64,000 bases of DNA, from assembly GCF_052425735.1 (NCBI RefSeq), contig NC_135759.1, positions 30,938,001 to 31,002,000 of the forward strand, written 5' to 3'. The notes under the pieces are model-generated. The model did not search any database. It had not been told where the DNA came from and saw only the letters and a program-made list of their open reading frames with translations. Shown here piece by piece: positions 6,893-58,088 of this stretch; position 1 is the first letter of the stretch; every line of letters begins with the position of its first letter. A program made the position numbers and the translations under genes. This stretch comes from Oculina patagonica (Eukaryota).

Positions 6893-9642
6893 AATCACTT
6901 TAATGTTTTTATGCAGGCTACGAATTTTAGCAACTTTTGAGTCGTGCACTGAAGAGGTCGTGTGTTAGCGGAAATGAGAATGCGTTTGATTTGTTGACAT
7001 AGAACCAGGTTATCAGAGAACGAAGATAAACTGACTGACTTGAGTTTCATTCTCTGCATGAATCGTATACAAACTAAATAATTACACTTCTGTTTCGACT
7101 TATTCAATCATAAAAACCGTAAAAAAGACAACCCCTCTATTGCCTTAACTTTCTCACAGCCTACATCTGCTTAGATTGTAGCCACAACGGTTTTTTGTTT
7201 TGTCGCGAAGATTTATTCCAACTGAGTGTTCTCGCTAACGGATTAGAATTTTAATTATTAGGAGAGTGTAAGACCAGCCCTCTGTCATGTTTTTCGATGT
7301 TTTGGTTACAAATTCAGGTAAACATTGGGACTGTGCCATAAACCGGCTAACGAACAGAAAATCAAAATTTGTTTCAAAAGTCAGTAAAAATTATGGAAGG
7401 CTATCGCAACGAGTGTCATCCGCCTTATCTTTATCTAAATGGGGAAGAGATTTCTAAAAGGTTATTTTATTGTTTGTTTTGGGTTTGAATAACGGCAATT
7501 TTTTCACCAGAAGTTAATCGTGATTTCAGTTTGTCGATATTGACGAGCTAATTGCAACGTCCATCATATGGCGCGAGTACGTCTTCAAGTACCGTTATGC
7601 TCCGTAGAATTAGAATCAGATATCTGAACGTGTTACTAGAAATTTTATTTAACAAATTGCTATAATTGTACGCTAAATTCGGCAAACAGGCGGCGAGAAC
7701 CGCCGCAAGTGGGAAAACGAATAAAAACCCTAGGAACTGTTGTTCTGAGGTACACAGAGGTTCTCGCTAGCGACCTCTCTCTTCTTACACTTCGTACATC
7801 GGGAACACAACTTGCGTGCCGGTTTGACAAGAGATATAACCTTTGAAAACCTGTCTTGTCAACCTTTCGGGCTGAAGTATTGTTCATAGAATATTGCTTA
7901 CAAGATTAATTAGTCACACACATTCTGCTTTAAAATAAAGGATCTTAATTAAATCGCCCCAATAGAATCTTTTCACACTGAGCGTAAAAAAGCCTGTTTT
8001 CCTGGGTGTTTGAAAGAGAACGGATGGATTACGAAAATTTGACACGAAATTTTTTGCGTGAACGATTTTAATTATCATTGTATTTTCTTCCGCTTATTTT
8101 GCATATTAAGACCAATTTCATTCAAATGTAAGCTTTTTATCAAACGACACGAACAGAACGCCCTTAATTTCAAGGCTAAATAGTGAAAACTAGGTTAAAA
8201 AAGCCGACACTTACACCGGCGCGAAATCAATGATAACAAACACAGCAAAATTTAACCTGATTAAATTTGCGAAACCGAGTAATGATGTGGCCGCGGGTCG
8301 TAAAAAATATTAAAATGATAAGTTCAGATCTTGTTGCGATGTAGCAATATAATTTACCAATTCGCATTTTTCAAATTGTCAATTTAGAAGGTGTTTTGGA
8401 GACGTAAAAAACTATCAAGCCTAAAAAAGCATTTAATAATGTAATTTTGCTTGTACGGAATACTTCCTTTTCTTATTCGATGAGTTTGTAGTGATTTCTC
8501 GCTTTTGACAGCTGCATACAAAAATTGACCAATTTAGATTGGCGCTCAGTCGAAAGTGTGAAAACCGCATCCGCACTATTGGAAAGACAATAACATATAT
8601 ATCCATTGCTCTTGTAATGTATTCTGTTCCCCTGGATATCACTTGATTAAAAAGTCCTAATATTTGAGTAAAGCAATGCCAAGAGCGCCCTTTCCAAGTT
8701 CAAAACAACGCAATTTGACTGGTAAGCAAAACGAAAGTCTAATGAACATCAAAAGCAATTTTCTCAGAGGTATAAAGTAAATTTATTCCTTAAGGTATAT
8801 TGGTTACTTAACAAATAACGCAAAAAAGCTTTTCTTCGTCGTTAGCAAATCTTCTCTTTGCGGGTGATGGATAGCGCTGGCCGCAGTAGGAACTCAGTAA
8901 TTGAAAAACAACACCATCAAGCCATACCGCGCATTTGGAGATTGTTCATAAAAAAATACTAAACCGAATTATAAGAATCGTTAGGACAAGGACCTGTTTA
9001 GAATGTAAGAAACACCAAAAGAACGTCATGTTTGTGTACCATCGGTAAGTTTTGAGTTCGTCAAGACAATAAATTAATTTACCAGCCGAAAGATGTAGAT
9101 ATGAATAGTCAGAATACGGAAAATACAATATTATCTAAAAGGAATTTATTTAGCTAATTGTTAAGTCCACGCTAAAACGAAATCATTTCAGGAGCTCAGG
9201 TTAACTTTGACAGTCAAGGAAAACATGTCGAAAACAATATGCAACGATGGTGTAACCTCTTTACAATGACGTTATAAAAGCTAAGACATTTCCAAAAGCT
9301 TTTTGTTAACATTCAATTCGATAACAATTTTTTTATTTTATTTGCAGAGCCTCGGGAAAATAGATCGCGTGTGATACCAAACCAGTGAACGTACAGACTG
9401 AATTGTACTTGAGCGCAAGATGGACTTGAAGATGTTCACCGGCAGCAATCGATTATTTGGAACTAGTTGAACCAACAGCAATCGAACTCATGCAAAAATA
9501 ACTAATTTTTATTAACCACAAGGGTAAGCAATCTTCAAGATAAGAAAGAAACTCTCATTATTAAACAGTTTGCCGGGATAAGCTTCACTGACACAACAAA
9601 ACAGCCGTGACAGAAGAGCGACACTCGGATCAAGAGTCAAGC

Positions 9643-10653
9643 ATGCTTCTTAGACTGGTCATTCCACTGAGCATCCTGTCAATTATCGTCATAGTAACAA
9701 ACACGCTGGTCTGTTTGTTGGTGTACAAGGTCAAATCAATGAGAAACTACACCAATGGGTTTGTAGTTTCCCTGGCGATCTCTGACATCTTGACAGGCGT
9801 ATCTTTCCTCATTCAATACAACGCCGAACTTCATGAGTGGTCAAAAGCAGCACTTAACGTCCTGTATGCCATTGTGCTCTTCGTAGGAGCAGCAAACCTT
9901 TGTGCAGTGACTTACGACAGATATTTGGCGATTTTGTATCCATTTTCGTACACGGAGACAATATCGAAAGTTTTCAAAATCCTGGTGCCAGCAATTTGGA
10001 TTTTCTCAATAATAGTCGCTTGTATACCGCTCACTTGGGAAGGAAATACGAAACTTCTTAACACCAAGATTTACATCTGCCTCGTCCTAGCCATTTGCAT
10101 AACTCTTCCTTATATCTTAATAGTCTATGCAAATTACAAGATCTTTCGGTTGGTTAGGCAATGTGTGCGGCGCGAACGAGAACTCAGTATCTCTTCAAAC
10201 AGTATGAAAGCAGGCATGAAACACAATGGCGCAAGGAAAGTATCTTCTGAAGCCAAGGTGGCAAGAGTCTTCGCCATTGCATCCTTAATGTTTGTGTTAA
10301 GCTACTTTCCAACTTTGTTTTACACTGCGGCGGCTGCATTTGGCCATGTTGACGTTGTTCCAAACCTTTTATTGGATTTCTCACCTTTTTGTGTCGTGTT
10401 CGGATCCCTTGTCAATCCAATCTTGTATTCGTTCATGAAACCGGATTTTCGTAGAGCTCTTAAGAAAATTCTAAGTGGACAACGAGCCTACCTGAACTCA
10501 AGAAGATCTCAAAGGTCTTCAATGCCAAGTATTGGTGAGACAAACTCCACTCCCTTTGTGCCAAACAAATCCAAGAAAAAATGTCGAATGGACGACGACG
10601 ACAACGACAACGTTTTTTATGAAGGAGACGAGCCAGATGAAAGTAAAGTCTAA
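9643..10653 (+). CDS. Orphan class A (rhodopsin-like) GPCR, paralog 1, about 336 aa, intronless CDS
   Basis: Seven hydrophobic segments with TM1 N, TM2 SLAISD, TM3 DRY, TM4 W, TM6 SYFP, TM7 NPILY and helix-8 DFR. The ORF track starts at GTG 9607; the first in-frame ATG is 9643, with an in-frame TGA upstream at 9589. C-terminus ESKV. Confidence 0.95.
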   Translation: MLLRLVIPLSILSIIVIVTNTLVCLLVYKVKSMRNYTNGFVVSLAISDILTGVSFLIQYNAELHEWSKAALNVLYAIVLFVGAANLCAVTYDRYLAILYPFSYTETISKVFKILVPAIWIFSIIVACIPLTWEGNTKLLNTKIYICLVLAICITLPYILIVYANYKIFRLVRQCVRRERELSISSNSMKAGMKHNGARKVSSEAKVARVFAIASLMFVLSYFPTLFYTAAAAFGHVDVVPNLLLDFSPFCVVFGSLVNPILYSFMKPDFRRALKKILSGQRAYLNSRRSQRSSMPSIGETNSTPFVPNKSKKKCRMDDDDNDNVFYEGDEPDESKV

Positions 10654-14083: not shown

Positions 14084-14203
14084 ATTAAGGACAGAAGCAA
14101 ATATTATTTAATATGAGACAAGCTGTTCAGGCTAATTTTTATTCCTTTTAATGACATAACTTTGTTCGTCCAACATGTATTTAGAAGACAACAGCAAGTG
14201 TGT

Positions 14204-14457
14204 TTACAGCTCGTTTTTACATGACTTTGCAAACAAGGCATCACTTACAAGTTTAACCCCAATCTTTTCTACAAATTCTGCGTATTGTTTAATGGTCGGC
14301 GAGTTGCAGCTCTTTTCGTCGGATGTTTTCGTGTAGCATGCAAACCACTGGATCGCATCTCCACAAATGCGTTGGTTTTTTTTCGCCAAGTCTATGAACT
14401 TTTGACTGCATATGACATGAACTTGGGCAGCACACGAGATGAAGGGGTCTCCTTGGT
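14204..14457 (-). CDS. Gene A terminal exon (second six-Cys module plus KNEL)
   Basis: Long polypyrimidine acceptor cctttttcttttgtttttaAG. In frame with ORF 14204..14389. Confidence 0.88.
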
Positions 14458-16590
14458 CTTAAAAACAAAAGAAAAAGGAATATTTTAAACAAACACTCCT
14501 CTTTGTCGTTATATTTATTTAGCCTTGGTTTATATTAGAATTTCACATTTTTGTGTCCAATTTTCATTTTATTTTGTGCAACACCCAAAACAATTCACAC
14601 GCATAGTCCGATATGTTAGACAGGCAACACATTTTCGATCACGACTCCAGTCTTGAAAGAAATCCTCCACATTAAAAGATAATCTTCAGAGATAGTAAGT
14701 TTTTTTCCTTCTTTTGATTCCCACTGACGCGCCAAGTCAAATCTGGTCAATCCACTCCCTCAACTGTGAAATAAATTTCCTTTACTTGAAAAATAAGCGA
14801 ACAGAGGATTGCAGTAAAGGGACCAGTGATTTTTAAATACTGTACATTCATGCCTTTGTTAATTCACTGTCAGTTTCTAACTACCCTTCCATTGTCTCAT
14901 CATGATTGCAAATTTCTTACCATAGTCTTCTACCAATACGTACTCATCGGCAACATCTGTGTATAAAAATTTGATCTAAATTAGAAGACTGATATTGTAA
15001 TGAGTTTATGGCTGAAACGTATTGCCTATAAAGCCTTCCCGGCATGGACAAATTTACTACCCCCGGGGGGGGGAGGGATTCGCATATGAAAGTGACGGGG
15101 ATGCTCGTCGTCTCGCTTAGGGGTGTAAATTTCGGATTTTTGGTCTCGCTTAGGGTGTTCCGGGAAAAACGCCCAAAACGCCAATATTTTAGCCATAATG
15201 GTCTCGTTTAGGGTTACACACGAAGAAATATACAAATATAAACTCCATTCTTAGTTTTTTGGTATCTTTTAGGGGTCAAGAAAAGCTTGAGCCACACCCA
15301 GATTGGTCTCTTTTAGGGGTTCTTTTCAAAATTTCCGACGAGCATCCCCGTCCGTTTCATGTGGGAGTCCCCCCCCTCCCCGGGTTTACTACCAAGGCTG
15401 GAATTGTATCCATTGATAAAACTCCAGTGTCAGTGTCAGTATTTCTTTTACTGCCTGCTTGTTAAAGCAGGAGGATATAGCCTTGCAGTTGCAAAACCAA
15501 AGATCAGGGATTCAATCTCCCTGCCGAAGTGAACACTCAGGCAATCAAATAAGAACTATGGTGATGCTTTTGCTGTAACATGTGAAAAAGGTTGAGATGT
15601 CACGTGGATTAGATGACCACTTAGCTTTGAAATGGTGGTCCCATCACCAATATGGAGTCCTCAATCTTTTAAAAGGAGCAACAGTGCAAATACACCTTTC
15701 ACCCAGTGTATCAACCATGCAAATTTACTTGCACCTGAAAACGACCTCATGTACTACTAACGTGAAAGGACAGGTAAAATAATGCCGACAACTGGCCATC
15801 TAAAGATGACGCCGACAACTGTAATGATGGTCTAAATCATAGTAACTTCTAGAATACTGCACGACAATAGCATTGTGCATTGTACTTACCTGTGTTTTCG
15901 ATGGAATCCTTCAGGCTTTTGAAGTCCACTTGTGGGCAGATGTTTAGCTTGGCTTCTAGCATTGCTACTTGCAAAATCCAGAAGCGGAAACGGTTTATTG
16001 ATTCCCCTTTGCAAGAAGGATCCTTAGCAAAGCACGATACAACATCCTGTGATTCAATAAGAAGTTCGCAGTAAGTTCCCAAGAAGACCAAGAGACAGAA
16101 CTTAATTTATTTACTCTGTATTTGCGGTAGAGCGTCTTGTTTTCATGAGAATAATCTATATCCCATAGAGGTGGAACATGAAAGTCATTTTTGGAGGGTA
16201 GAAGTTGTGGTGGAAGGGAGAGGGGGGAAAGGGTGAATAAAACGACAGGGAAAGATGAGAAAAAGCAACAAAACTCATACGGGTCAAAGATAAGCAAAAA
16301 CCGATCACCTTGCTCCTTCATGCAAAGCTAAATTTACATCAGCGTGTGGACGAAATAACACACATAGAACAAACTAACGAAAACCTTAGTCTTTGTAATT
16401 TTACTTTATTTACCTGAAGCCGTGAGCAATGTTGTTCAGGGCTTGGTTTGCGTTTGAGAAGTGCTTTGTACTGAGAAATACATCCCTGAAGCAATTGGGT
16501 TTCGCCGCATTTCTTCGCTCCTCCGGCAGAAAACAAACTGAACGAGACAACAACCAGTAAAAGCACGCCAGTTGACCTCGCTATATTCAT
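14204..16590 (-). CDS. Gene A: secretory-pathway Cys-rich protein, about 207 aa, with two six-Cys modules and C-terminal KNEL. complement(join(14204..14457,14921..14956,15890..16046,16414..16590))
   Basis: Hand-spliced; all introns GT-AG with phases 0,1,1 and an open frame throughout: MNIARSTGVLLLVVVSFSLFSAGGAKKCGETQLLQGCISQYKALLKRKPSPEQHCSRLQ / DVVSCFAKDPSCKGESINRFRFWILQVAMLEAKLNICPQVDFKSLKDSIENT / DVADEYVLVEDY / DQGDPFISCAAQVHVICSQKFIDLAKKNQRICGDAIQWFACYTKTSDEKSCNSPTIKQYAEFVEKIGVKLVSDALFAKSCKNEL*. Exon structure and Cys pattern match gene B. AATAAA at 14138-14143 (-). Confidence 0.88.
14921..14956 (-). CDS. Gene A 36-nt microexon (phase 1-1 linker)
   Basis: tttttatacacAG|...TATG|GTAAGA, in frame. 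Gene B has a 39-nt microexon at the same position. Confidence 0.7.
15061..15384. mobile_element. MITE with 8-bp TSD (hAT- or P-like) in gene A intron 2
   Basis: CCCGGGG...CCCCGGG termini; subterminal inverted ACGGGGATGCTCGTCG / CGACGAGCATCCCCGT; TTTACTAC duplicated at 15053-15060 and 15385-15392. Confidence 0.88.
15890..16046 (-). CDS. Gene A coding exon 2
   Basis: Acceptor aatcacAG|GAT; donor ACAG|GTAAGT. DVVSCF...ICP aligns with gene B DVVHCF...MCP. Confidence 0.88.
16414..16590 (-). CDS. Gene A coding exon 1 (signal peptide plus first three Cys)
   Basis: ATG at 16590 in ATCATGA context; donor CAG|GTAAAT. An upstream acceptor ttttctccacAG begins the exon at 16691. Confidence 0.88.
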
Positions 16591-18082
16591 GATGGCTCTC
16601 TTGGTAAACTGTGGGAATACAAAAGGACAAATTAATGCTAGACAATCTTGTAACCCGTTCACTCAACCCCGATGACTTGGAATTCATTGACCTGTGGAGA
16701 AAATATGTAGGAGAACAGCTAGGTTAATTGTCCAAGACTTACCATTCAGCAATTTCGTGTATTAGACGAGGTTGAGTTCTAAACTACAAACACGATAATT
16801 TGCAAAAAGAAGTTTTTTCATTCGGGCAGTGAGGTTGTATTTACATATTTTATTAAATAACAGCAATTTTTGTATTAATGTTTGTACAGCGGGATACACT
16901 GTATAAAATACTGCGCACTTTACTAATATTATATGTACATCAGCAAACCATTATTTGTGGAAAGCAGGGTTGTTGAAGGTGACATGGTGGCCTTTCAACC
17001 AATTAAGGTGGCCCGAACCTATTTATTTACGCGATGATTGCATTTTTGAATCGCGCTTTTTGGAAAGAAAAATTTCACCGATTTCTTCGAACTTTTGCGT
17101 CCTGAGTGAAAAATGTTCGAATTTACGGAAAATGGAATTCGATATTTTCAAAATCTAGTTTTTACCAAAAATGTCCATTATTTTAAAACTCGACGACAGA
17201 TTTCTCCTAAACTTTAGCAAATAAGCCTTAGAGCTCTCAAGTTTTCTATCAGGAAGTTTCATGACAATCCTGACCATGCAACTCGCTGCACAAAATACTG
17301 GTAAAATTTTTTCTTAAAATGCTACGCTAATGCATTCATGTCAACCGACGCACAAATAGCGGAACAGTGAAGCCAAACTATCGGTCATCTGCAAGGATAA
17401 TGATCCCCAAAACCTTATCAAAAAGAAAGTGAGTAATCAGAAACCTACAGCAAATACAGACAGCGCAACAAGAAACACAATTTTATGACAAAAACGTCAA
17501 TCGAATAAGATTAAAGCGTTTCGCCACTCAGCTGTCAAGCCACTTATGACAACATTTCATGACCAAAACCCTCCTCTAATCACCCTTAAATTCTAAACTA
17601 CTTTAGCTAGTTGTAAACGAAGTTCTGTTATTGGCTTAAAATGTATCCCAATACGTTCTTAACTATCAGAGCAAACGTTCTGTATTTAGCTGATGAGATG
17701 CTGAACAAAACGGCAATCGAGAATCCCCAGTCATAGAAACTGCTCCATCGCATCACGAACATATAACATGGATCTGCTTTGAGCACAGATATCGATCCAG
17801 GACATAAGAATACAGGAATTCAACACCAAGTGAAAGATAATTTATCCAATTCTCTTAAAGGGCTATATCACTGTGAGTATTTTTTGTAATATATAAAATC
17901 ATCTCATAATCAGAGGAAACCTTGGAATAATGGTTCACCAAGTTAGATAAACACCAAAGAAAAGATAACAATAAACTAAAAAAAAAGAAAGAAGGATGGC
18001 AGTGAATGAGAAAGATTGAGATGGACTGCGATTGACAAACTTAAAAATCAAGGCTAAATTTATCAAGATACGTCATGCGCTA

Positions 18083-18367
18083 TAGAGCGGTTTTCACTTG
18101 AGTGTCGAAAGTAATTCGCGTTCGCACTGGTTTGCATTACTACCACTAAGTGATTGGTTTAAAGCCCTCGCGCCACTTTATCAACCAATCAGAAGTAAAA
18201 CCAGAACCAATCATGACTCGCTCACGCACGTTTTCCCGCGCTTCGTGCTGGCTGCTTGTATTTGCTTTGAGTTTTGATTGGTTTACTAGATTGTCTGTGT
18301 TCTTTGTGATTGGCTAGAGTGATTACTTTGGTTTTGGTTTTACGACACTCATTTGAAAACTGCTTTA
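18083..18367. mobile_element. MITE rich in CCAATC/GATTGG motifs
   Basis: Imperfect TIR TAGAGCGGTTTTCACTTGAGTGTCG / CGACACTCATTTGAAAACTGCTTTA. Confidence 0.8.
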
Positions 18368-20010
18368 GGACCCGGAGAAAGGAGAAATTATATTTGATCA
18401 GTAATAACATATAAATAAAGGAACCTTTGTTTAAATACTGTCCCATTCATTAATGGCGGTAAAAGTGAACTACCGTTTATGAAATAATCAATATATGACA
18501 CGTCTTGTGTTTCCAAATTCCAACAACAACAAAAATTGATCGTAGGGAAAGAGCATAAATCTCTGATTAGCAGTTCATTTGTTGAAATAGTTTGATTATA
18601 TTATACCCAGGAAGGAGACTATACAACGGACCCAAACTTAACAAATAATCGTAATAAGGGCAGATTTCCTATCATGAAATTAAAATTAAAAATAATAATT
18701 TGCAAGCAAATAAAAGATTCATTTTAATGTCCAGCGTGGGCGAATTGTTTAAAAGCTTTGTACCCAGTATTCAGTGCTTTGTTTCCTTCAAAAAGAGTGA
18801 ATTAAACCGATTTCCGTGACCCATAAAGCCATAATGCTGTCGTAACACAACTGGACGTTGAGAAAAACGAGAGAAATTCCTTTCAGTCTATGGAAATAAG
18901 GAAATAAAGTTGTCTTTTCGAAAGAAATAAAATAATAAGCACCTGAGTCCTACGCAGTCCTATGACACCATTCTAGTGTTATGGCAACACTACGTGAAAT
19001 CTAAGAAAACGTTTCTTGCAAGTAGAAAACAAGAAAGTTTTTGATATACGAACACACACTAATTGTATTTTGGGATTATATCTTGCAAAAATTGTTGTTG
19101 GTTAGCTATTGTGCCGTGGTTTGGCTATTGTTTACACTGACTATTGAATCGTTTGTTCACAATCCGCAAAATTTCTTTTTCTCTTAGTGAGACGGAAACA
19201 TCTTGGAACTGAGTAAAATTTTATTTCATGCTGCCGTTTTTTTTTTAAAGTCAGCTGTGCCTACTGCATTAAAATATTGTCCAGGTCATTCATTTTGGAC
19301 TTTTGGTTCTCTAAAGGCTTGTTCTCTTTTATTATGTTTACAAACGAACTTAGAGCTGAGCCCAGAACCAACAAATTTATAACATGCCATTTCCCAAAGC
19401 CTAATGGCGCTATATACCTGTCTCTTGCAGCCCTTGAAGAATGGAAAAAATATTACATCACAATCCGTTTCAAATGATGCTTGCCACACACAACTGAGAT
19501 TGTCAGTACAAAACGTGTGTTGGTTGCCCCCGGATCAGAAGATATATCTCGAGAACGTGAGCCACTGCACTGCTTAACAAACAACTAGTCCTGGTCTAAC
19601 ATAACTAAGAAATCCATCTTTAAAATTTTCAATTTATCAAGTCTGCAGCCACACAAATCATGAATCGCAAAAAAACGCCACCTATCTGTTACTTTTCTTA
19701 AAAAGATTCTCTCACTGCATCGCTTAATTCAGGGTCTCTGAAGAACTGAGTTGCCGAAACCATATTGACCACTATGGTTCTTTCTCGGCGGCACGAAGAC
19801 AATACAACTTAAACGTTATTGAGACTATTATAGGCGTTCCAGGACAAAGAAGTAACAAAATGTACCTTGCGCTTGGCTAGATTAAAGTAAAGCATATGGT
19901 CAACTGTACCTTACGTCGAAACTAAACTGTCCCAGTTGCAAAAAGTTCGTTCTTCTGCTTGAGAACTGCAAAATCCCGATCACAAAGGTAGCGCATTCAC
20001 TTAAGGAAAT

Positions 20011-20020
20011 CTTTTATATA
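20011..20020 (-). promoter_or_regulatory. Candidate TATA box (TATATAAAAG) for gene A, ahead of a putative non-coding first exon ending near 19910-19915
   Basis: Consensus TATA followed about 100 nt later by GTAAGGTACAG donor-like sites. Gene A coding exon 1 is preceded by a clear acceptor, so an upstream exon is expected. Confidence 0.35.
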
Positions 20021-21681
20021 CACATTAGTGATAATGTGAAAGAGAGCAGCTGCATTGAATAAACATGATTATTAAATATTTTGAGCTTCCGTTTTAGTAA
20101 ATAAACGAGGCAAAACGTGGTTGTTAAATTGTTTCTTTTTAGGCAGTTTCTGCCGGTAAACTAATTCTGGCGGATGCAGCAAGTTGGCAGCGTTAAGTTA
20201 ATACATTAAGTCCCCGGATAATTAAAAAAACCCGATCCCATCTCTCGATGAAGTGCTAGAGCACTGACGACTTTTTTGCGATGTTAATTTATGCATTTGT
20301 TTGGTCAGAGGTGTAAAAATGCTCAATTTCGAGAAAAGAAACGGTTAATTAACGTGTTTTCTTCAACGGAGGAAGAAAAGAAAGTTGCCATTTTGTTCTA
20401 TAAAGTTTCGTCTAAAAGGGAAATTGTCTTTTATATAACATTTTGAATGGAAACACGAATAAATTAGCTAAATATCCTAATTTGTTCTAATTTCTTAATA
20501 TTCAACAGGCCTCGAGACTAATTGAACTTGACATTACATCGCTACCAAAGAAAAACACAAATTACGAATCCGGCAAATTTGATACAGAACATCCAAACAT
20601 CTTGGCACGCATGCAATCCACAGAAAGCCTTTCTCCCTTGATGGTAAAACCTGACATTTATATTTCGGCGGAGGTAATTTGCTGTCTTCACTTGGTCTCT
20701 CATCTTTATCTTTCAGCTGCAGTATTTTCCTGTTTTCCTTTTTGATACCCTCGAATATCCATCAGAACCGCATTGCGTCAAATACGCCTTATTGCCGACA
20801 TGGAACTAGGATCTTCCTCTTTCCATGTATATAGGGCCATGAATGGCCGATCAACGTTACGGTGAAATTATGTTCTGTATGTTTGATTTCACATATTTGG
20901 CAGAAACAGTTTTCTGTCACTTTTCTCTCTGGTCGCTGAAAAGGCCTAAAAAAGTTACTGTTCGTTTGCTTTTTGGTAATTTCAGGTTGTCCATATTCTT
21001 TGATATATGTCAACAGCATATATGCACTTGTTAGCTCGGGTCTCTCAGAGTCAACTTCAATTTGAAGTTTCTTTCCACTAAAATGCCTGAAATTCTTATC
21101 AGCCATTTTGGCTAGTGAAAGTCCAAAACCTACTTGCCTAAACTGCATTTCTACTAGCGTGTGGCTAGTTAGCTACCGTTAGTCTCGAGCCCTAAATTAT
21201 CGCAATTTGCAGTTAATTAACTTTATCGCGAGTTTTCCTAAGTTTAGGGAAAGCTCCTAGAACATCAAAGCAAATGCATATTCCAAAAAAGGCTGGTCGT
21301 CAAATGAGATCAGAACAAGAGGACAAAAATGTTAGATTGTTCATTAGGTTCCAAAGCTGAAAAGGATAACGAGTCTACAGACTTTCGTTCTGACTTGATG
21401 AAGAAGTCTACGATTAGGTTACTATGGCTACGACATTGAGCCATACCAATCTGTCTAACACAGACCAGATGAGACAACATCCACAGAAATGTTTTGTTTT
21501 GGTTAACAAAGAAGAAGGACGCAAATATTGACGTATATCAGCCAGTTAATATGGATAATAAGTGATCCTATTATCTAACAGGAAACACGAGTCTTGCCTC
21601 CATTTTATAGGAAAACAATGGAGAAACAAAACCAAATACTGGACCCACGTAATAATACTGAAGAACGCCCAAGATAAACAT

Positions 21682-21970
21682 ATGGAAGAATCGGTAGTTT
21701 AATATCTAGCGTGTTGAACTCCGGATCGAAAAGTCCGGGTTCCAAAGCTGGGCGGTTCAATATGTGTTGCGTTCTTGACTCTCCACCCGACAGTACAAAT
21801 GGGTATACAGGCCAAACGGTTGCGAAAACCTGACAGAATGCCGGGGGGCAAACCTGCCAACCTTTCTAGGGACATTAGCAGTGTTCCTATCCCGGACACT
21901 CGTAACATGAAGCGACTGCCCCTGCATTCGTGGGCCAGTATATGCTCATGCATATGAAGGCTTTAACTTT
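21682..21970 (+). mobile_element. Decayed copy of the same SINE family
   Basis: Collinear blocks ACTCCGGATCGA..GTCCGGGTTC, CTCTCCACCC..GTACAAATGG, AACCTGC, TGGGCCA. Confidence 0.6.
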
Positions 21971-21975
21971 GTTAA

Positions 21976-22197
21976 GGGATGGACCATTATTTTTTGGAGG
22001 GGGAGGGAGAAGATCAAATTCCAAGACAAACAATTTTTTCAGTGTCGTTGTCTGTGCAAACAATTCTTGCCGGCTTCATCTTCCTGCAGACAATGTTTTT
22101 TGATGTCTGCAAACAATCTATTTGAGCTTTGTTGCTTTTGCAAACGATTTTGTTTCAGGATTTTTGATGCCCCCTTCAAAAAAAGGGGGTCCGTCCC
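21976..22197. mobile_element. MITE of the same TIR family as 31104-31329, TAA TSD
   Basis: GGGATGGACCATTATT ... GGTCCGTCCC with TAA flanks. Confidence 0.8.
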
Positions 22198-22409
22198 TAA
22201 ACAAGTTGTGTTGAGTATTGTAAGCAGTTGATCCTGTCGCTTTGGAAACATGTCCCACAGTTTAATGAAGCATGTGAAAAAACTAAGTTTTTAACATACA
22301 TTTCTTGGCTGAGCCGGCTGATTCAACAAGGGAGTCGAGAGTGACGGTCTTTCAGCTTTTCTAGTTCTTTCTTCCTTAGCTTGCTTACACAACCAATATC
22401 ACATTTCAT

Positions 22410-22880
22410 TTAGAGCGGTCTTTGATTGACTGTCGAAAATAGTCATGTGTCGGTCTTTGTTTGACTGTCAAAATTAGTCATGTGTTTGCCTTAGAAACCT
22501 GCTCTGGCAAATCAGAGAACCAAAAAAGCTGCCTTTAATTGCGACCAATCTGGAGCACTGTAGGGTTAAGCAATCGTACCTTCTTGGCGTTGAACGATTT
22601 TCCTCGCTTGGCACTGGTGCCATGCTTTGCCGTTGCGTTTAGATTGGTCAATTGAGTAATTGTTGTAATAGACGAATTGGGCTCACGTGTTTACATCTTT
22701 GTTGCCACCCATACATCCCCTCCCATGCACTCAGTTGCGTGTGACAAAGTGCACAATTGTAACTCCCCATAGAATCACCACGCTGTCTGAATTGGGTGGC
22801 AACAACTATGTAAACACGTTAATTTAATCCGTATATTGTGATTTGCTTTATAGGTTGGTTTGTTTTTGGTTTTATGTCTG
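22410..22880. mobile_element. Decayed copy of the 18.1-kb MITE family, with a second small inverted-repeat element (about 22667-22838) nested in it
   Basis: Starts TAGAGCGGTCTTTGATTGACTGTCGAAA. Nested ACGTGTTTACAT..GTTGCCACCCA / TGGGTGGCAAC..ATGTAAACACGT. Host-like TTTTGGTTTTA resumes afterwards. Confidence 0.55.
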
Positions 22881-22991
22881 CATGCCATTATCCTGCAATT
22901 GTGCCCTAAAACTAGGATAAAGGAGAACGGGAAGAAAAGAGGCCTCACAAAGGAAAGGAGAACCTGATCGATATTCTTTTCAATATGACGT

Positions 22992-23204
22992 AGCCTTCAC
23001 CCCAAAAAACTAATGGCCAAATCGTGTTGGTGTGTGAACGACGCAACAACAGCAAAGAAGTTGGCCAACTGTTGGCGATAAAAAGAACTTGTCTCTACTC
23101 TCGCCAACGTGATTACCAATCGTTTTTGTGTCGTTCCCACACACCAACTTAAGTTTGCCAACACGAGTTTCCCAACTCGAGTTTGTCCTGTGAAGGCCGC
23201 TTTA
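22992..23204. mobile_element. Probable decayed MITE
   Basis: GCCTTCAC / GTGAAGGC termini; internal CCAAC repeats. Confidence 0.45.
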
Positions 23205-24318
23205 TAGGATCCCTCTCGACCAGTATGCGTGGCACACATAGAGGCTATTGGCTGTCGTCTTGTGGAGGTGCCATGTACTAAAAATATTCAAAGGTTTTTC
23301 GTGCTTACTGTCCAAACGTAGTGTCGGATCAATCTCAGGAAATTTCTAACGCGTGGCTCCCACGTTGCCTAATATACGATACGGTTTCCCAAATAAATAG
23401 CAAAGGGCTTCAATCAAATTCTTACCTTTAGGGATTCAAACATGTAACTGTCTTTTGGAAGTTGTAAACCATATTTTTAAATATTCTGAACAAGGTTTTT
23501 AAACTTTTTTTTTTGTGTCCTTGATAACTTCTCTTGGGACAAGTTGTTAGTGCCAAATTTCCGGCAACAGCTTTTTTCTTCCTCATAGCCGCACCATTTA
23601 ATAGATTGATCTGCTTACAGGTGGAACACCGTATTGTGAAATGTTGTTTAAACGTAACAACAGCAATTAACCCAAATAACACTGAAGCGAGGGATTTACT
23701 GAATCCGTTCATTATCAGGAGGCAACATAACAAAACATAACTTTAAATGCAATACATGGTGTTCACAGTTTTAAGGAAATCCATTTTGACACAATGACGA
23801 AATATCTGAACGGTCAGTTTCAGATGAGAACACGACACATAACTTACGGGGATCAAACAAACTTGCGTTTCCATGCGTACACTTATGTCCGTCCAGGATT
23901 GAACGCAAGTATTGTTTAATGAGTACTTTATGTTTGACTGTGTTATTTGACATTGTAACAGATTTTGGTGTGTTTTGGTTTGTGATGCCTGGCATAAGAA
24001 ACGTGCATCTCATTAGCGTTCAATGCTGGACATATCTGATAAGCTTGTACGGCCACTCTGTAAATCCCATGTTTAAATAAGCGTGATCTGTGTACATATT
24101 AATCAGGTTTGGAAGCTGTGAACGCACGTTACACGCTTCAATCCTTACGGTTTCTTGCTGCTATGCAAACTCCTTAAGAGCGACCCTTTATTATACAGAA
24201 ATAGCAGTAACACAGGCATATATACGCCCAAGCTTTCACATTTATTTAGCTTCAAGAAAACGTTGACAAATCTAATTTGGCTGAACGATCAGCATGTCAC
24301 AACAAACGATCCACACGA

Positions 24319-24539
24319 TTAGGACTCGCAGTCAGCTACTAGATTGTTTACCACTTCGCCAACGAACTTGGCATAGCGAACTATGGCCGATTGTTGGTCA
24401 CAGACGCTGTTATTGTAGCATTCCAGCCAATCCCTGCCATCATCGCAGATGCGGCGGTTAGCCTTGACTGCGTCAACAAACATTGAGTTGCAACTGAGGT
24501 GAAGAGTTTTTGCACACTTCTTGTCGACTTCAGACATGC
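24319..24539 (-). CDS. Gene B terminal exon (second six-Cys module)
   Basis: tatttattAG acceptor; in frame with ORF 24319..24537. N.RIC.D...W..CY and YA.FV are shared with gene A. Confidence 0.9.
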
Positions 24540-27218
24540 CTAATAAATATAATGTGGAATCGTCGAGTCCTTAATATTGAAATGAATATTACATGTTCAA
24601 GAAATTAAAAACATGCAAGGAAGTATAAATGAAAGAGGACTGTCCTTTTGCTTTTGATGTCGATTCTAAATAATAGCTGAACGAAATGTTTCAAAAGTGA
24701 ATATCTTATTTGCGCTTTTCTTATCCCATCGTATATCAGTAATTGTATGTCCATTTAACGCTTCACAACACTAATGACTGACTGGTAAAGATTGAAGCGC
24801 AGCCAGGATGAGACATAATAAAAATTAATAAATAACATTCACTGGCTAAAAATATTAAAAATAATGAGCTTTCGGCTGTCGACGCTCTACAGCCTTCGAC
24901 GGATAAAAATTGAATACAAAATGAATAAAATATATACAAGAAAGGTGAGATAAAAAGAAAATAATGAAAAACAAAAGCGAAGTAAAAATGTGCTAATTAA
25001 GAGGCTATTTTTTAAAAAGAATACAGTATTGGCTCGGAATGGGCTTTGAATTATTGTCAGCATGCTTAGTAGCAGAGGTGTGCCAAGCCTCCAAAGTTTT
25101 TCTAATTCGAAAAGAGCCTTTGTCAATGACACTAGAGTTCACAAAGTCTATGCGATGGTCGAATGAACACGCATGTTTCGCAATGTTTGAGCCATTCGCA
25201 CAGGTTTTTACATTCCTGATATGTTCTTTTTTGCGGGTTTCAAAACATCGGCCGGTTTCACCCACATAGCACCAATCACAATCAGCACAAGGGATTTTGT
25301 AAACCACGTTCGGTTGTTGTTCAATTGGTGGTCTAAATTTAGGGGATGGAAATTCTTGTTGTAATGTCTTGTGTGGTTTATTAATAACTTGAATGTCGTG
25401 CTTTCGAAGAATCCTTGTTAGTGGTTTCGTGACACCATTGATCAATGGAAGTACAGCGTAAGTGTTGGAATGCACTCTTGAAAGCTCATTATTTTTAATA
25501 TTTTTAGTCAGTGAACGTTTTTTATTGACTTACTGGTAGTCCGCAAGTGGTCGTAGATGCGTTTAGGCTTTGCTGTTGTCAAAGATAGAATGAAAAAAAA
25601 AAAAACATTAATGAAAATTTTACATAACACAAGCACAAGGAACTGTCACAGGCCCTAGTATGTTTTCTAGGGAGTGAGCGGGCTTGGGTGGTGCCGAGAG
25701 GACTTCTCGTAATTTGTGGTATTTTCCTTGAAGCTGGGTAGGCTATTAAGGTGTGATCGTGCCATACAGTTTTGGCGACCCATGCCTATGAAAATAAATA
25801 TTCAGTCTGTGTAAAAAAAAACTTACAGAATTATCAAAATGGATTTCTGGGTATTATAAGACGCTCATTCAACTTTAGACCAAAATATACGATATTTCCA
25901 AATTCTATTTCATACCAGAGCCTTCCCATGAACTTTGGCTCGCGAAAGCAAGATGGCATAAAAATAACCAGCGTTTTTAAATAAAACGTCTTTGAAGGAG
26001 CTACGTCACGGACAACGCATCTTGAAAAAAAAAATGGCAAGTTTTTTCAAGTTTCTTATTGGACCAAAGAATCTCTCTCTCGTTAGTCGGATGTCCTCAG
26101 GTTAGACATAACTCGAATCTGCAACTTTAAAATTTTGTTTGGGAACGAGTTTAACTGGCCCACCAATCTCAGATCTCAAAACAATAACAGAAAGCAAAGC
26201 AACAACCTTACGCTGGCTACAGAATTTGAAAAAAAAAAAGAAAATTGGTCACGTTTTTAGTATACAACTTTACCGCGACCACGAACACCCAGTTTAGCTT
26301 CTACGGACTTTTGGTCTCTGCATGCTAAAACCTCATGTCCATATTGACGGAGTTCGTTAATATATTTATTTGAAAAATAGCTCTTACAGTCGTCAGGCAG
26401 CGTGCTGTAGAACCTTTGTAGCTGTTGGTCGTCAATAGGACACATGTCAAGAAACTTCTCCAACGTAGCAACCATTAAAACCCATCCTCTCCAACGTCGT
26501 ATCACTTCACCCGATGTACAGTCAGAGTTCTCGGCCCAAAAGCAGTGAACCACATCCTGTAATTGAAACAATGAACATGGAATCAGTTATGTGCTGCGTC
26601 AAGAAATTCCCAATATTAATCAAGAACGCTTTCACGCTGAACGCTTAACAGCATATATAATGCCAGCTTTGAACACATACCTACAAAGACTAGACTTTTT
26701 CCTCAATAAAAAAATTCGAGACAATGCACGCCAACGCGCGACAATTTATGTTTGCATTTTTTCTTCTGTATTAATTCGGTCTCTCTCCTTTTTTAATGAA
26801 AGGGGGGAGCGGGCTGTTAACTGACATACAGATTGTTAATAATGTTAAACATTGTTGCTTTGTCAATTTGTTAATTCGTACTAAAGTGCAATGCCTGGAA
26901 ACTTGGGTTTAACATTTTTTAATCCGTGCTATGAGGACTTTGCATAGCTGAGCTGACCCTTCAGTGAGGCATTTTCACTCGACGCTTTCTTTGAACGTGT
27001 AATTCGATTGAATTTTACACGTGTAAACACCAATTCTTTCAGGTCAAAGCCTACTAAATTACCGTTAAACGTTGACAGTGAGAGCTGATATCTGGCATTC
27101 TGTCCAACTCTTGCACATATTGAGATATGCAGTATTTCACTTGGCGTCGTTGACAATCGGCATGAGATGATACAATTAAACAGAGTATGATAGCAAGGCA
27201 AAAAATAACCCGCTTCAT
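24319..27218 (-). CDS. Gene B: secreted Cys-rich protein, about 194 aa, paralog of gene A. complement(join(24319..24539,25534..25572,26388..26556,27063..27218))
   Basis: Hand-spliced, GT-AG, phases 0,1,1: MKRVIFCLAIILCLIVSSHADCQRRQVKYCISQYVQELDRMPDISSHCQRLT / DVVHCFWAENSDCTSGEVIRRWRGWVLMVATLEKFLDMCPIDDQQLQRFYSTLPDD / SKPKRIYDHLRTT / SMSEVDKKCAKTLHLSCNSMFVDAVKANRRICDDGRDWLECYNNSVCDQQSAIVRYAKFVGEVVNNLVADCES*. Typical signal peptide (SHA-D). AATAAA at 24241-24246 (-). Confidence 0.9.
24822..25531 (-). mobile_element. 5'-truncated Penelope-like retroelement: GIY-YIG endonuclease end (ORF 25005..25475) plus 3' region, bounded by a 52-bp inverted repeat, in the last intron of gene B
   Basis: NVVYKIPCADCDWCYVGETGR...RKKEH...IAKH...H.IDF...LEAWH is the Penelope-type GIY-YIG pattern. 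24822-24873 matches the reverse complement of 25480-25531 at 47/52 by my count. Confidence 0.88.
25534..25572 (-). CDS. Gene B 39-nt microexon (phase 1-1 linker)
   Basis: Poly-T tract then ctttgacaacAG acceptor; ACCA|GTAAGT donor; in frame. Confidence 0.75.
26388..26556 (-). CDS. Gene B coding exon 2
   Basis: tttcaattacAG|GAT acceptor; GACT|GTAAGA donor. Confidence 0.9.
27063..27218 (-). CDS. Gene B coding exon 1 (not in ORF track, 52 codons)
   Basis: AAAATGA start just after acceptor ttcttgttgcAG (exon begins 27232); donor ACG|GTAATT. CISQY...HC..L shared with gene A. Confidence 0.9.
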
Positions 27219-30099
27219 TTTGATGTCTGAATCTGCAACAAGAAATTACAGGCAATAATTAAAAAGTGTTGTAAACGTGTAGACTTAAAGAAATCCTGGC
27301 AAATATCATTGGATATTAGTCTAGAGCATATTAGTATAGGACTTGTCCATGCCCACAAATATTTTATCCATCACCAGAGACAAAACATCCCAATGAGTTG
27401 AGAGGTTTATTTGTGTCATGTATGTTTAAAGAAATTTAAGGGCGCCTGCAGGTCGGTATCAGACATTCATGGACACAAAATATTACAACCCCACAAACAA
27501 ATGCATTAAGCGTCCCTCACATTTGCTTCCCATGTGCAGGGTCCTAAAGGAGTTTAAGGACCCAGGGCTCCAGGCAAAAAAAACCCGGCTCCACGGCGAA
27601 ATTTTTAGGATTCAAGGGCTCCGTTCCGGCCACCTTCCCTCTGGGAGTCTGCTAGTTGGAGCAGACTCAGAAAAGGGCGACGGCCAGGAAAACAGAGCAA
27701 AGTCTTGATTTCGTGTCATAATTTGAAAAATCGATTTCTTTCATTTTCGACCCATAAATAGCCATTAACTTGTAGTTTGTTCCGCTAGAAGTCCTTTTAT
27801 TTTGTTTTCTTGCCTCGACTCGCCGAAAATTGCATTGACCAAAATCACTCCAGCAAACAAAACTGCTCAGAGAGGCTTGGCCACTACCTATAAAAAAAAT
27901 AATTTTCTTTTATTGGAATATGGTTTCATGACTGTAGTAAAATTCACCAAACCAAAAAAAATCCAAAAATGAGAATGAGGTTTTTATGATTACGGAGACT
28001 AGGTGTTGGATACGGCAAAACTCGACATGGTAGGACTAAGCCATCCTTGCCTTGTTTCCCGGTTGGGAAAAAAACTGCAAACGACTACACTGAGAGACCC
28101 TCTCATTCATTCCTTAAAAAAGTGGCAATGAGTATTGCTTTTTTGACAGTTGAAGGCACAGCTAATCCTTCAAGAAAGTGCAGTGATCAAACCCCGCGGT
28201 TGATGCATTCCTTGGAAATCGTTACCCTACAACTGTGTCAAGGAACCCTCAATTTGTTTTCCTTTTTGGAACCCTAGAAGCATGGCCAGCTTTACAACCT
28301 TTTGGAACGGACATCATGAAATAATACAATAATTTACAAGCAACCTTGCAATACTATTGATGTACAATTCTAGCTTCCCATTTGATTTCCTATTGTAATT
28401 AATTTTCATGTGAGAATGCACTACCCGTCCTGCAAACAACCCCACTATTATATACCCTCGCAATTCATACCCTGTAAAAATCTTTTTGCTATTTAGGGTG
28501 CAGTATAAAAGGCTTAGCTCCACTAAACCGTACCATTCATTAAAACGCACTACCCTCGATCAGGGAAACCTACAAACAACTGCAGTAATCGACATTCGTG
28601 TTGGAAATTACACTACTTAATCTGAATTGCCAACCGACCTACAACGCTACAAAAAAATCATAAGATTTAAAACTACCTGTTTCTGGGTATGACGTAGAGT
28701 GGTTGTGATATGATGGTTAATAGGAATACCTACTTTGAAAAATGTGCGCAAAGGATCGCAAGCTCTTTCCAAGCTTATAACTGCAGGCGACTGAACTTCT
28801 GAGGTGTACAAACCACTAAAAGATGAGAAAGTGTCTTTTTGCGTCTTCGTATTAATATTTTCTTCTGTTTACAAACGAATTATATTAAGCTGAAAAAAAT
28901 AAACAAAACAGGACTATGATGACCATTTTGCCGCCAGCTAATGAAATATGCGTTATTTTTCTATTTTCTACCACTATTGTAATATTAAATATGGCGAACA
29001 TGTTATTTTTCAATGTTTCTTAAAATGGCCTTTGGTAGTCTCGTTAAAACTTTCTGACTGAGTTGGAATGCAGCGTTAAAATCGTTAAAACGCTAGCGAT
29101 AGCTAAAATCAATTAAAACAAGAAAGAAACAATTATATCATTATATAAACGACTACTCGAATTATGTCATTTTCATTTCTTTGTATTTTTCAGTGTTTGT
29201 GGGAAACTAACATCTGAAGTTGATAGCTTGATATATCGCCTTATGGAAATTTTATTAGTCACGTTTTAAAATATTGCAAAATTTAATGTAGCTAGTCTCG
29301 GTTAACTCGTGAAATATTTTAACAAATCCTTGGCAAGGTGATGAGGTGAAACTTTTCCTTAATAATTTTGAAATCAAATTATAAAACTAAAATCAAAATC
29401 TAGTGCGAAATGATAGTGAGGGTTTCGTGAGGAAATGTTTATTTTAATATTTCTAAACAAATTTTAGTTTAAAATTGATTAATTAAAGCGGTTAAACTTC
29501 TCCATCTGTCACTGCAAATAATTGCCGAGTTAGCAAGATACCTTTTTCATTTCTTCATAAAATAACTTATTTGACCGTAATGAAATTTGAATCGGCTACT
29601 TATCGAATTAAAAAATTAATATAACATCTTGGTGGACACATCGGGAACACAACAAAACCTGTCACTTACAAGTTTCTGATTGAGCCAAAATTAAACATAA
29701 AATTTAAGATCTATTCATGACAACGAAAACGCTTTTACTGACATTCGAAAAAAAGAAAAACATCCGCTCAAAAGTAATTAAAATGTGTAACATTTTATGT
29801 CATCGCCAATAGTCATCACTTCGCCGCTTTGTTTAACTTTGTTTTACCATATACGAGCCGAGACAACTAAAAATGAGCAATTTAAAATTGATTATGATAT
29901 TTTTTAATAAAATAAGGCTGAAATACAATAAGTAAGGACATAAAAACCGACGTTCGAACTTTCTCATTTTCCCGTACAGGTTTGAAATCACACATATCTT
30001 CACGAAGGCTATTATGTTAGCTTAAATGCTATTGATAAAGTATAACCCTTGCCGTTTAATGATCTTGAATCCTGTCATATCATTCAGTTTACATGAATA

Positions 30100-34820: not shown

Positions 34821-35777
34821 ATGCAACCAAGTGAAGTCGCGATCCCTTTGGGCTGCCTGTCACTCTTAGTCGTGGTCACAAATAGCTGTGTGTGTCTGCT
34901 AGTGTACTTGCACACAAAGTTACGGACCTACACAAATGGATTTGTTGTGTCTCTGGCAGTGTCGGACATCCTCACAGGTGCGCTGCTCCTTCCTTTGTAC
35001 ATCACCGTACCGACATTCCCCGGGACGGGATATGTCGTGGGTGCAATTTTGTTAACTGGAGTTGCCAATGTGTGTGCTGTGACTCTTGACAGATATCTGG
35101 CTATAGTGAAGCCATTTACTTACTATGCTACCATGTCTAGACACTTCGTCAAGTTCATAGTCGGCTCGTGGGTTCTTCCACTACTTATCTCGATCATCCC
35201 TCTTATTTGGAACTCAAAACCTGGTCTAGCTCATACAGTCTACATGTTTTTGCTCCAAGGTCTAGGCGTTATTGTGCCATACATTTTTGTCTGCACGGCA
35301 TACTACCAGATCTTTAATCGAGCAAGAATCATCGTAAGAAGGTTGCGAAGGGAAAGCAGCCTAAGCTGGCGCAATCACGAGAACAAAAACAAAGGAAGAA
35401 AAAATTCAAACGACATGGTCTCCGAGGCAAAAGTTGCCAAAATGTTTGCATTGATTGCAATTTCCTTTATCTTAAGTTGGATGCCAGTCATTTATCTGAC
35501 CAGTGTTATATCAGCAGTCAATAACTATGATTTGGTGGACAAGCTATCTCCAGTGTGGCTGATAGATATTTCACTCTTTACTGTTGCACTAGGGTCTATG
35601 GTCAATCCTGTGATTTACTCATTTTTTAAGCCTGACTTCCGAAGCATTATTAAGAGAATGCTGCGAAAGCGAACTCAGAGGTCATCTCTGAAACACAGTC
35701 AAACCTGCGTGATTGACGTTGCTTTGATTCTGAAAAGGCTAGAAAGTGGAAAAGACGGCAAGGAGACGAATTTATAA
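34821..35777 (+). CDS. Orphan class A GPCR, paralog 2, 318 aa
   Basis: SLAVSD, DRY, SWMP, NPVIY, DFR motifs. Shares RTYTNGFVVSLA and SEAKVA-type blocks with the other five. ATG start. Confidence 0.95.
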   Translation: MQPSEVAIPLGCLSLLVVVTNSCVCLLVYLHTKLRTYTNGFVVSLAVSDILTGALLLPLYITVPTFPGTGYVVGAILLTGVANVCAVTLDRYLAIVKPFTYYATMSRHFVKFIVGSWVLPLLISIIPLIWNSKPGLAHTVYMFLLQGLGVIVPYIFVCTAYYQIFNRARIIVRRLRRESSLSWRNHENKNKGRKNSNDMVSEAKVAKMFALIAISFILSWMPVIYLTSVISAVNNYDLVDKLSPVWLIDISLFTVALGSMVNPVIYSFFKPDFRSIIKRMLRKRTQRSSLKHSQTCVIDVALILKRLESGKDGKETNL

Positions 35778-57476: not shown

Positions 57477-58088
57477 TCAACGCTTGCGAAGAAAAAACCA
57501 TTCATTAATGGATTTGTCTTCAGGATGTGACAGACTTGTCATCACCTCAAACCCATAGTTAGTAATTTCTTGCAGTATTGCTGTAGTAGAAGAGTCCGCC
57601 TGTTCCTTGTCAAAGGAAAACACAAGAGGACTACAAATACAGTCGTGTCCTTGAAAAATCTCCTGCAATATATGTTTTTCAGCAAACACTGACAACAGAG
57701 TTTCCAATCCGTGTTTGTCCCTGTCTAGCGTTAAGCGAATCACTTGATTTCTTGCCACAGTTCTTTTCAATTTGATTTCGTTCAGGGCGTCAATAAGTCG
57801 AGGAATTTGATAGAAATCAGCCTCTTCAGTGAGTTGATCAAACTCTTGGAAATTGTCAGGTAAATTTAACTTGGATGAGCGCAGGAAATTTAACACATAT
57901 CGAAACATAGGTCCGTCACGATCAATGAAAACATTTCCTCGGGCGTCCTTCGCCACCGGCCGCCGGCCGCTAAACATGACCCCCAACATGGAGTCTGGAA
58001 ACCTCGTGAGGCTGGCAAGTGATGTGGTATAAACGTTGCCACCGACGTTTACGTCGATTATGGATGGAAAATCTTGAACTTTATCCAT
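57477..58088 (-). CDS. KCTD-family BTB/POZ (T1) protein, KCTD6/11/21-like BTB, about 203 aa
   Basis: NVGG.VYTTSL.SLTRFPDSMLG.MF, FIDRDGPMFRYVLNFLR and EADFYQI are KCTD BTB signatures. The C-terminal GFEV...EWFFLRK resembles KCTD C-terminal domains. ATG at 58088; acceptor AG at 58101-58100; probable 5' UTR exon ending near 58484 (AAG|GTAAGC). Confidence 0.93.
   Translation of the reverse strand: MDKVQDFPSIIDVNVGGNVYTTSLASLTRFPDSMLGVMFSGRRPVAKDARGNVFIDRDGPMFRYVLNFLRSSKLNLPDNFQEFDQLTEEADFYQIPRLIDALNEIKLKRTVARNQVIRLTLDRDKHGLETLLSVFAEKHILQEIFQGHDCICSPLVFSFDKEQADSSTTAILQEITNYGFEVMTSLSHPEDKSINEWFFLRKR

Follow-up and report, generated by a model that had tools for sequence, protein, structure and literature searches.

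Transcribed paralogues of Oculina patagonica belong to an unnamed hexacorallian family of predicted tandem three-helix-bundle proteins with plausible kinship to the RGM N-domain

Introduction

In corals and sea anemones, the second body axis is patterned by BMP signaling, a pathway with few known co-receptors, of which RGM is one. Disulfides linking C1-C5, C2-C4, and C3-C6 are found in the ectodomain of RAMP1, a member of the vertebrate-type RAMP family. The N-domain of RGM is a three-helix bundle with three disulfides, in which the RGD/RGN loop between helices alpha2 and alpha3, together with helix 3, binds the BMP/GDF ligand (PMC7354924). A RAMP crosses the membrane once and consists of a single bundle, the membrane segment, and a short tail (PMC9832379). 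Here, we describe two genes, A and B, in a 64,000-nucleotide stretch of the genome of the coral Oculina patagonica (NCBI RefSeq assembly GCF_052425735.1, contig NC_135759.1, positions 30,938,001 to 31,002,000), to which we refer as the window and whose positions we use throughout. Each gene encodes a small protein with two six-cysteine modules that we compare with these systems.

We find that A and B are transcribed sister paralogues in an unnamed multigene family that has so far been seen in Hexacorallia only (stony corals and sea anemones). Taking all parts of the reading jointly, we consider it fairly probable that A and B are expressed paralogues in a hexacorallian family of tandem disulfide-stapled bundles related to the RGM N-domain (RGM_N in Pfam).

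Results

Two transcribed genes share one exon layout

The window is eukaryotic DNA with a guanine-plus-cytosine content of ~38% and without runs of N. Both genes lie on its minus strand, and we assessed their models with RNA contigs from four public runs per gene (eight run-by-gene comparisons). An initial annotation, made from the sequence, had predicted for each gene four exons with intron phases 0, 1, and 1. The four coding exons and the phases were borne out by spliced contigs, with each of the six predicted coding junctions (three per gene) seen in 4/4 runs and all introns bounded by GT..AG, whereas the layout itself had to be extended by an upstream non-coding exon, which brings each gene to five exons in all. 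The features are as follows.

Gene A coding sequence: 16590-16414, 16046-15890, 14956-14921, 14457-14204, minus strand; 207 amino acids (aa)
Gene A upstream non-coding exon (5' untranslated region, UTR): ~19910-19978, a minimum extent, minus strand; from an RNA contig and its genome match
Gene A exon 1: 16414..16610, minus strand; ATG at 16590, signal peptide, and first half of module 1 (C1-C3); next intron phase 0; junction 16414/16046 in 4/4 runs
Gene A exon 2: 15890..16046, minus strand; second half of module 1 (C4-C6, CKGE loop, helix 3); next intron phase 1; junctions in 4/4 runs
Gene A exon 3: 14921..14956, minus strand; 36-nucleotide (nt) micro-exon forming the inter-module linker; next intron phase 1; joints 14457/14921 and 14956/15890 in 4/4 runs
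Gene A exon 4: 14131..14457, minus strand; entire module 2 (C7-C12), C-terminal KNEL, stop codon 14204-14206, and 3' UTR
Gene B coding sequence: 27218-27063, 26556-26388, 25572-25534, 24539-24319, minus strand; 194 aa
Gene B upstream non-coding exon (5' UTR): ~28734-28827, a minimum extent, minus strand; from RNA contig ends and their genome match
Gene B exon 1: 27063..27232, minus strand; ATG at 27218, signal peptide, and C1-C3 of module 1; next intron phase 0; junction in 4/4 runs
Gene B exon 2: 26388..26556, minus strand; C4-C6 of module 1; next intron phase 1
Gene B exon 3: 25534..25572, minus strand; 39-nt micro-exon forming the linker; joints in 4/4 runs
Gene B exon 4: 24229..24539, minus strand; entire module 2, C-terminus ...CES, stop codon 24319-24321, and 3' UTR

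The upstream exons were placed from contigs that run beyond exon 1. For gene A, a contig extends 67 nt past 16610, with the extension matching 19912-19941 and a GT donor following the exon, and for gene B, contigs of runs X5 and X4 have loose ends of 93-94 nt that are an exact match to 28734-28763, beyond an intron bounded by GT..AG. In the observed gene A transcript, a TAG stands in frame ahead of the ATG at 16590, in support of a product of 207 aa.

Although the initial annotation had taken both genes to be hidden, RefSeq annotates both of them, so they are hidden to a plain open reading frame track only. Gene A is LOC144641972, an "uncharacterized protein" of Oculina patagonica whose isoform X1 (214 aa) gains seven additional N-terminal residues through an alternative first exon, and the product of gene B is identical to XP_078359662, "uncharacterized protein LOC144644117 [Oculina patagonica]". 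For gene B, GenBank also has an older model, KAL9984641 (ACROYT_G006962, 181 aa), which lacks the 39-nt exon 3 at 25534-25572, which is present in XP_078359662 (194 aa), in the RNA contigs, and in all orthologues. We found no paper that mentions the LOC identifiers of family members. Overall, we regard the gene models, together with the membership of both genes in the family described below, as nearly certain.

Each protein is predicted to fold into two disulfide-stapled bundles

A and B are 37% identical across 172 residues (blastp E 2e-30), a likeness beyond chance. The cysteine gaps of A are 8,17,8,6,24 in module 1, 35 between the modules, and 7,14,8,9,28 in module 2, and those of B are 7,17,8,7,25, then 38, then 7,14,8,5,23. 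These module spacings are exactly those that had been read from the sequence at the outset, and the shared blocks listed with them (CISQY, HC.RL.DVV.CF, and others) are visible in the alignment of A and B. Both proteins start with a strong hydrophobic stretch (12-aa hydropathy of 3.0 in A and 3.6 in B), and neither has a second hydrophobic segment, the best 19-aa hydropathy beyond the signal peptide being 1.09 in A and 0.91 in B. With this lone N-terminal stretch, A and B are soluble proteins of the secretory pathway, as the initial annotation had held. The chains stop 2-4 residues past the last cysteine, with KNEL at the C-terminus of A and CES at that of B. A and B are compact, soluble, disulfide-rich proteins of the secretory pathway, each with two predicted bundles.

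The AlphaFold2 model of A, built on a family alignment of 62 rows, had a mean predicted local distance difference test score (pLDDT) of 88, rising above 94 across the mature chain, and a predicted template modeling score of 0.81. It places three helices in each module, at 37-54, 58-73, and 81-99 and at 137-158, 161-178, and 184-206 (P0102 numbering), with two short linker helices between the bundles, in agreement with the tandem three-helix bundles proposed earlier. Module 2 of A folded alone reached a pLDDT of 92. We derived the disulfide pairs from paired cysteine losses in sequences rather than from model coordinates. Among 25 full-length relatives, all 11 double losses within a module affected one of three pairs, namely {1,5} in seven cases, {2,4} in two, and {3,6} in two; of the two single losses, one belongs to a gene model truncated at its N-terminus. 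The paired losses point to C1-C5, C2-C4, and C3-C6 disulfides in both modules, a pairing that also fits an up-down-up bundle. When the two modules were compared as profiles (hhalign), they matched with a probability of 86% and E 5e-6, with C1 to C5 in register, which supports the internal duplication suspected from the cysteine pattern. This signal vanished once the cysteines were masked. On the model and the loss pattern, two three-helix bundles with C1-C5, C2-C4, C3-C6 topology are highly probable.

The proteins belong to a hexacorallian multigene family

Searching the Oculina patagonica genome with a module-2 profile, made from the last exons of A and B and four weak paralogues, we found at least 24 module-2 exons, which lie in clusters on C7 (9.30-9.51 Mb), C2 (25.90-25.99 Mb), and C9 (22.55 Mb) and as singletons; module-1 exons adjoin some of them. 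The two genes had initially been described as a pair, and they are indeed paralogous but form part of a larger set. An exhaustive HMMER search of 1.84 billion protein representatives returned only 75 clusters at E <= 0.001, several of them of ~190-230 aa with two matched stretches. The named members are all hexacorallian (Oculina, Orbicella, Stylophora, Pocillopora, Desmophyllum, Nematostella, Actinia, and Exaiptasia) and are all called "uncharacterized" or "hypothetical"; those of Nematostella include LOC116611902, LOC116614719, LOC116615375, and LOC116619978. Of the 24,736 models in Pfam, none matched A, B, or any relative at its cut-off, and the earlier suspicion of an unnamed family thus held.

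Maximum-likelihood analysis placed the clades of A and B next to each other as sisters (support 84/95), with orthologues of each in other stony corals and B on a long stem. We found no DNA-level repeat linking genes A and B and no tRNA in the region. The sister clades with orthologues in other corals, together with the lack of such a repeat, indicate that the duplication that gave rise to A and B is old. A search of AlphaFold DB clusters with the whole model returned only three proteins, all uncharacterized, at E <= 1e-5, and two of these (Actinia P0017 and a Pocillopora entry) belong to the family.

Two further AlphaFold DB entries are worth recording. The unnamed A0A7M7GED1 matches the whole two-bundle model over residues 140-355 of 357 (E 0.011, template modeling (TM) score 0.59 by query), and A7RXW5, a tyrosinase-domain protein, matches module 1 over residues 3-90 of 381 (E 0.08). 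Each of these proteins could represent the module in a different architecture or a different taxon.

The modules resemble the N-domain of RGM

RGM_N (PF06535) gave the best E-value of all Pfam models and was matched by both module types, at 23.3 bits for module 1 of P0031 and 22.1 bits for module 2 of P0042 against a gathering cut-off of 24.2. At E <= 1, it was matched by 6/62 family members. Oculina has an RGM of its own (G000:C1:5235220), with an FGDPH motif and PF06534 and with matches to human RGMB chains at E 9e-5, and the cysteine gaps of its RGM_N are 7,19,8,10,21, compared with 7-8,17,8,6-7,24-25 in module 1 of A and B. Against an RGM_N profile of 75 sequences from cnidarian and vertebrate RGMs, the module 1 profile scored a probability of 90.8% (hhalign, P 1.2e-6, C1-C5 in register) and the module 2 profile a P of 2.5e-3; in a column-shuffle control, 0/150 attained the score of either module. 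When the module-2 model was compared by Foldseek (3Di+AA) with 350,542 PDB chains, the RGMB N-domain ranked first (4ui2_C) and RGMB accounted for 7 of the top 15 matches. An RGM analogy had been drawn by eye in the initial annotation, and these results make it the best lead.

The likeness to the RGM N-domain (human RGMA/B/C; PDB 4UHZ, 4UI0, 4UI2, and 6Z3J) extends to a bundle of ~70-80 residues with three disulfides, to six cysteines in the same order at nearly the same spacing (framework C-x7-C-x~19-C-x8-C-x7-10-C-x~21-C), and to a C-x-G-[DEN] loop that joins helices 2 and 3 in module 1, with C-K-G-E standing at the place of the RGM alpha2-alpha3 loop in module 1 of A. Unlike RGM, however, A and B have no RGM_C/vWFD-like domain (no PF06534 match), no GDPH autocleavage site, and no C-terminal hydrophobic signal for a glycosylphosphatidylinositol anchor, and hence they are not members of the RGM family. 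They also differ in that the whole mature protein consists of two tandem bundle copies and in that some family members have tails resembling endoplasmic reticulum (ER) retrieval signals.

A second RGM_N frame is present elsewhere in the genome (G000:C7:32317497-32317670; L038:923-1240:+). It reaches 25.8 bits on Pfam RGM_N, with cysteine gaps of 7,18,8,7,~20 and no RGM_C in the same frame, and it shows that, in Oculina, RGM_N-type bundles are not confined to canonical RGM. Its gene differs from A and B in the single bundle seen and is weakly similar to the module 1 profile (P 0.004). An RGM_N search of the whole genome found the true RGM and one further gene and none of the family's exons.

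Several results weigh against kinship with RGM. In Pfam, RGM_N was matched neither by the exons of A and B at E <= 10 nor by the whole proteins at E <= 1. The Foldseek matches to RGMB have E-values of 0.8-4.3 and TM scores of ~0.38, family profiles retrieved no RGM chains from PDB sequences and no other credible match, and the module-2 model found among Swiss-Prot AlphaFold models only PlsY helices at E > 2. The RGMB ligand contacts Leu103 and His106 are not conserved, with Ser and Arg at the places in A that align with them by sequence. The RGM_N profile signal is gone once the cysteines are masked, as is that between modules 1 and 2, so the similarity is essentially one of the cysteine framework. 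Searches with the whole model gave nothing under E 0.5 in the PDB (Foldseek), and a shape search of the ESM Atlas gave TM scores no higher than 0.37.

A and B could instead come from an independent, lineage-specific family of disulfide-stapled three-helix bundles, with a convergent cysteine framework and partners unrelated to BMP signaling. In favor of this stand the disappearance of the profile signal on masking, structural scores within the range of generic three-helix bundles, the absence of a Pfam match at cut-off, and the lack of conservation at the RGMB contacts. Yet five successive cysteine gaps agree with those of the coral's own RGM_N, both module types point to the same Pfam model out of the whole collection, and the RGMB N-domain came out first in a structural search that is independent of these profiles. 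Moreover, masking also destroys the match between the two modules of the family itself, and the test is thus too harsh to separate homology from convergence. We therefore regard convergence as unlikely, although it deserves serious consideration, and judge that the bundle is probably a divergent homologue of RGM_N, a rating held down by the cysteine dependence of the signal and by the failure to retrieve RGM from PDB sequences. A place among the nematode-type CPG4/DUF19 cysteine-rich domain families is very improbable. Exon 4 of B did match CPG4 (PF15481) at E 0.008, but its 17.1 bits fall far short of a cut-off of 32.7 and only 2/62 members match at E <= 1. A language-model feature search with exon 4 of A in the Atlas, where we treated scores < 0.9 as leads only, brought up a DUF19 cluster at 0.80 and, at 0.83-0.87, hypothetical proteins of nematodes, but DUF19 (PF01579) was never matched in our Pfam scans and neither DUF19 nor CPG4 entries appeared in the whole-model search of AlphaFold DB clusters. 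Least probable of all is that A and B serve as soluble RAMP-like accessory proteins for the class-A G protein-coupled receptors (GPCRs) that flank them. The RAMP analogy of the initial annotation survives only in the fold and the disulfide topology derived from the loss pattern, which match a disulfide-stapled bundle of similar size in the ectodomains of RAMP1-3, and A and B do sit within an array of six intronless 7tm_1 genes. But A and B comprise two bundles and are soluble, with neither a transmembrane helix nor a cytoplasmic tail, they gave no Pfam RAMP match (exons at E <= 10, A at E <= 1) or other sequence or profile signal to RAMP, and no RAMP chain was among the top 50 structural matches; the missing helix and the missing RAMP profile signal show that they are not RAMPs. 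The adjacency to receptors is itself probably a matter of chance, given that the genome holds >2,000 GPCR candidates and that 0/125 of the closest paralogues of these receptors lie at the family's other clusters.

Matches to zf-RING-like Pfam models, seen in 12/62 members (best E 0.02), fall on a motif (C-A-x-x-x-H-x-x-C) with which module 2 begins, and we took them as spurious in a secretory, disulfide-bonded protein.

C-terminal tails and candidate ligands

The PROSITE pattern PS00014 for ER targeting is [KRHQSA]-[DENQ]-E-L. With its signal peptide and terminal KNEL, A conforms to this pattern, and B, which ends in CES, does not. The A-type orthologues end in NAEL, KNEL, or KEEL, with the exception of one that ends in SIAI and shows that the -EL ending is not universal, and the B orthologues of Stylophora and Pocillopora end in RSDL and RSEL; altogether, ~18/81 family proteins have -EL or -DL endings. 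A may thus act in, or cycle through, the ER, to judge by its tail, and the initial description of both proteins as secreted may not hold for A.

Bundles of this kind are probably binding modules, and if the kinship with RGM_N is real, ligands of the TGF-beta/BMP family are the obvious partners. A and B could then work in the secretory pathway as soluble modules for binding or escort, with such ligands as their likeliest partners, and in them an RGM-type domain would stand free and in tandem, apart from the RGM C-terminal domain and membrane anchor, its two bundles packed as one compact soluble unit. B would be released from the cell, and A would be retrieved to the ER through its KNEL, a similar -EL ending being found on most orthologues. 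By analogy with RGM, binding of BMP/TGF-beta ligands by A and B is a tentative proposal that we hold to be unlikely rather than likely. When mature A was co-folded once with the mature domain of coral BMP2/4 in two copies, the score was 0.01, which we count neither for nor against binding. Candidate ligands in the genome include a BMP5-8-like gene and a bona fide BMP2/4, and TGF-beta domains are encoded by at least 47 exons, many of which are arranged in tandem. In function only, the small secreted cysteine-rich proteins of the Noggin, Chordin, and DAN families offer an analogy, as A and B, too, could trap TGF-beta-family ligands in the extracellular space; the folds are unrelated (cystine knots and CR/vWC domains), and ligand binding by A and B is hypothetical.

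On another reading of the same tails, A and B would act mainly in the ER lumen, where they would escort or chaperone membrane or secretory cargo and be retrieved by the KDEL receptor, rather than modulate extracellular signaling. The KNEL of A, the related ends of its orthologues, those of the Stylophora and Pocillopora B proteins, and the share of such endings in the family all speak for this. It must be set against the CES terminus of Oculina B, against several -EL tails that fall outside the strict pattern, and against the many members that terminate directly at the last cysteine, in view of which retrieval cannot be the family-wide mode; we consider such a mainly lumenal role improbable. 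The proposal that unites these threads is that Hexacorallia expanded a free-standing tandem RGM_N family (~25 genes in Oculina) as soluble or ER-resident traps or escorts of BMP/TGF-beta, a new class of BMP modulator derived from the RGM head and split into secreted (B-type) and ER-retrieved (A-type, -EL) forms. We offer it as a speculation, somewhat more doubtful still than ligand binding as such.

The TGF-beta-domain arrays, which are large and hold most of these exons, consist of short open frames at G000:C4:43.44-43.86 Mb, C4:54.07-54.12 Mb, and C1187 and are a lineage-specific ligand expansion. The BMP5-8-like gene (C9:22.639 Mb) lies ~85 kb from two genes of the six-cysteine family (C9:22.55 Mb), a closeness that may be coincidental.

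Flanking genes and intronic elements

Two further groups of genes were located in the window.

Tandem array of six intronless rhodopsin-type GPCR genes flanking A and B: 9607-10653, 34821-35777, 40328-41305, 45319-46371, 51216-52076, and 55535-56452, plus strand; the one checked scored 102 bits on 7tm_1
Two single-exon BTB_2 (potassium-channel tetramerisation type) genes: 57477-58100 and 62428-63066, minus strand; E 3e-20 and 3e-18

Two introns contain material of other kinds. Within intron 2 of gene A, positions 15067-15450 carry a pile of many short RNA contigs, with a summed depth in the thousands and many loose ends and internal joints, a pattern suggestive of a transcribed, highly repetitive element. 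In gene B, intron 3 holds a 174-aa open frame (25008-25529, minus strand) with low RNA coverage and, by eye, a GIY-YIG-like motif (YKIPC..C...YVGET......R..EH). It had no Pfam match at E <= 0.001 and may be the remnant of a Penelope-like element.

Discussion

Genes A and B represent a real, expressed, and uncharacterized hexacorallian family, for which kinship with the BMP-binding head of RGM is plausible though unproven. Even if the family has no function in BMP signaling, its description defines a domain family that lacks a Pfam model, provides a confidently predicted fold and a disulfide map derived from sequence alone, and corrects one GenBank gene model, that of gene B. The presence of the family in Nematostella makes the proposal experimentally tractable.

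Should the proposal be true, a ligand-binding domain would have been freed from its receptor context, duplicated, and expanded, and a family of small, soluble, RGM-head-like proteins would give cnidarians a further means of regulating ligands, one that has yet to be studied. The interest of the family would rise sharply if its members do bind ligands.

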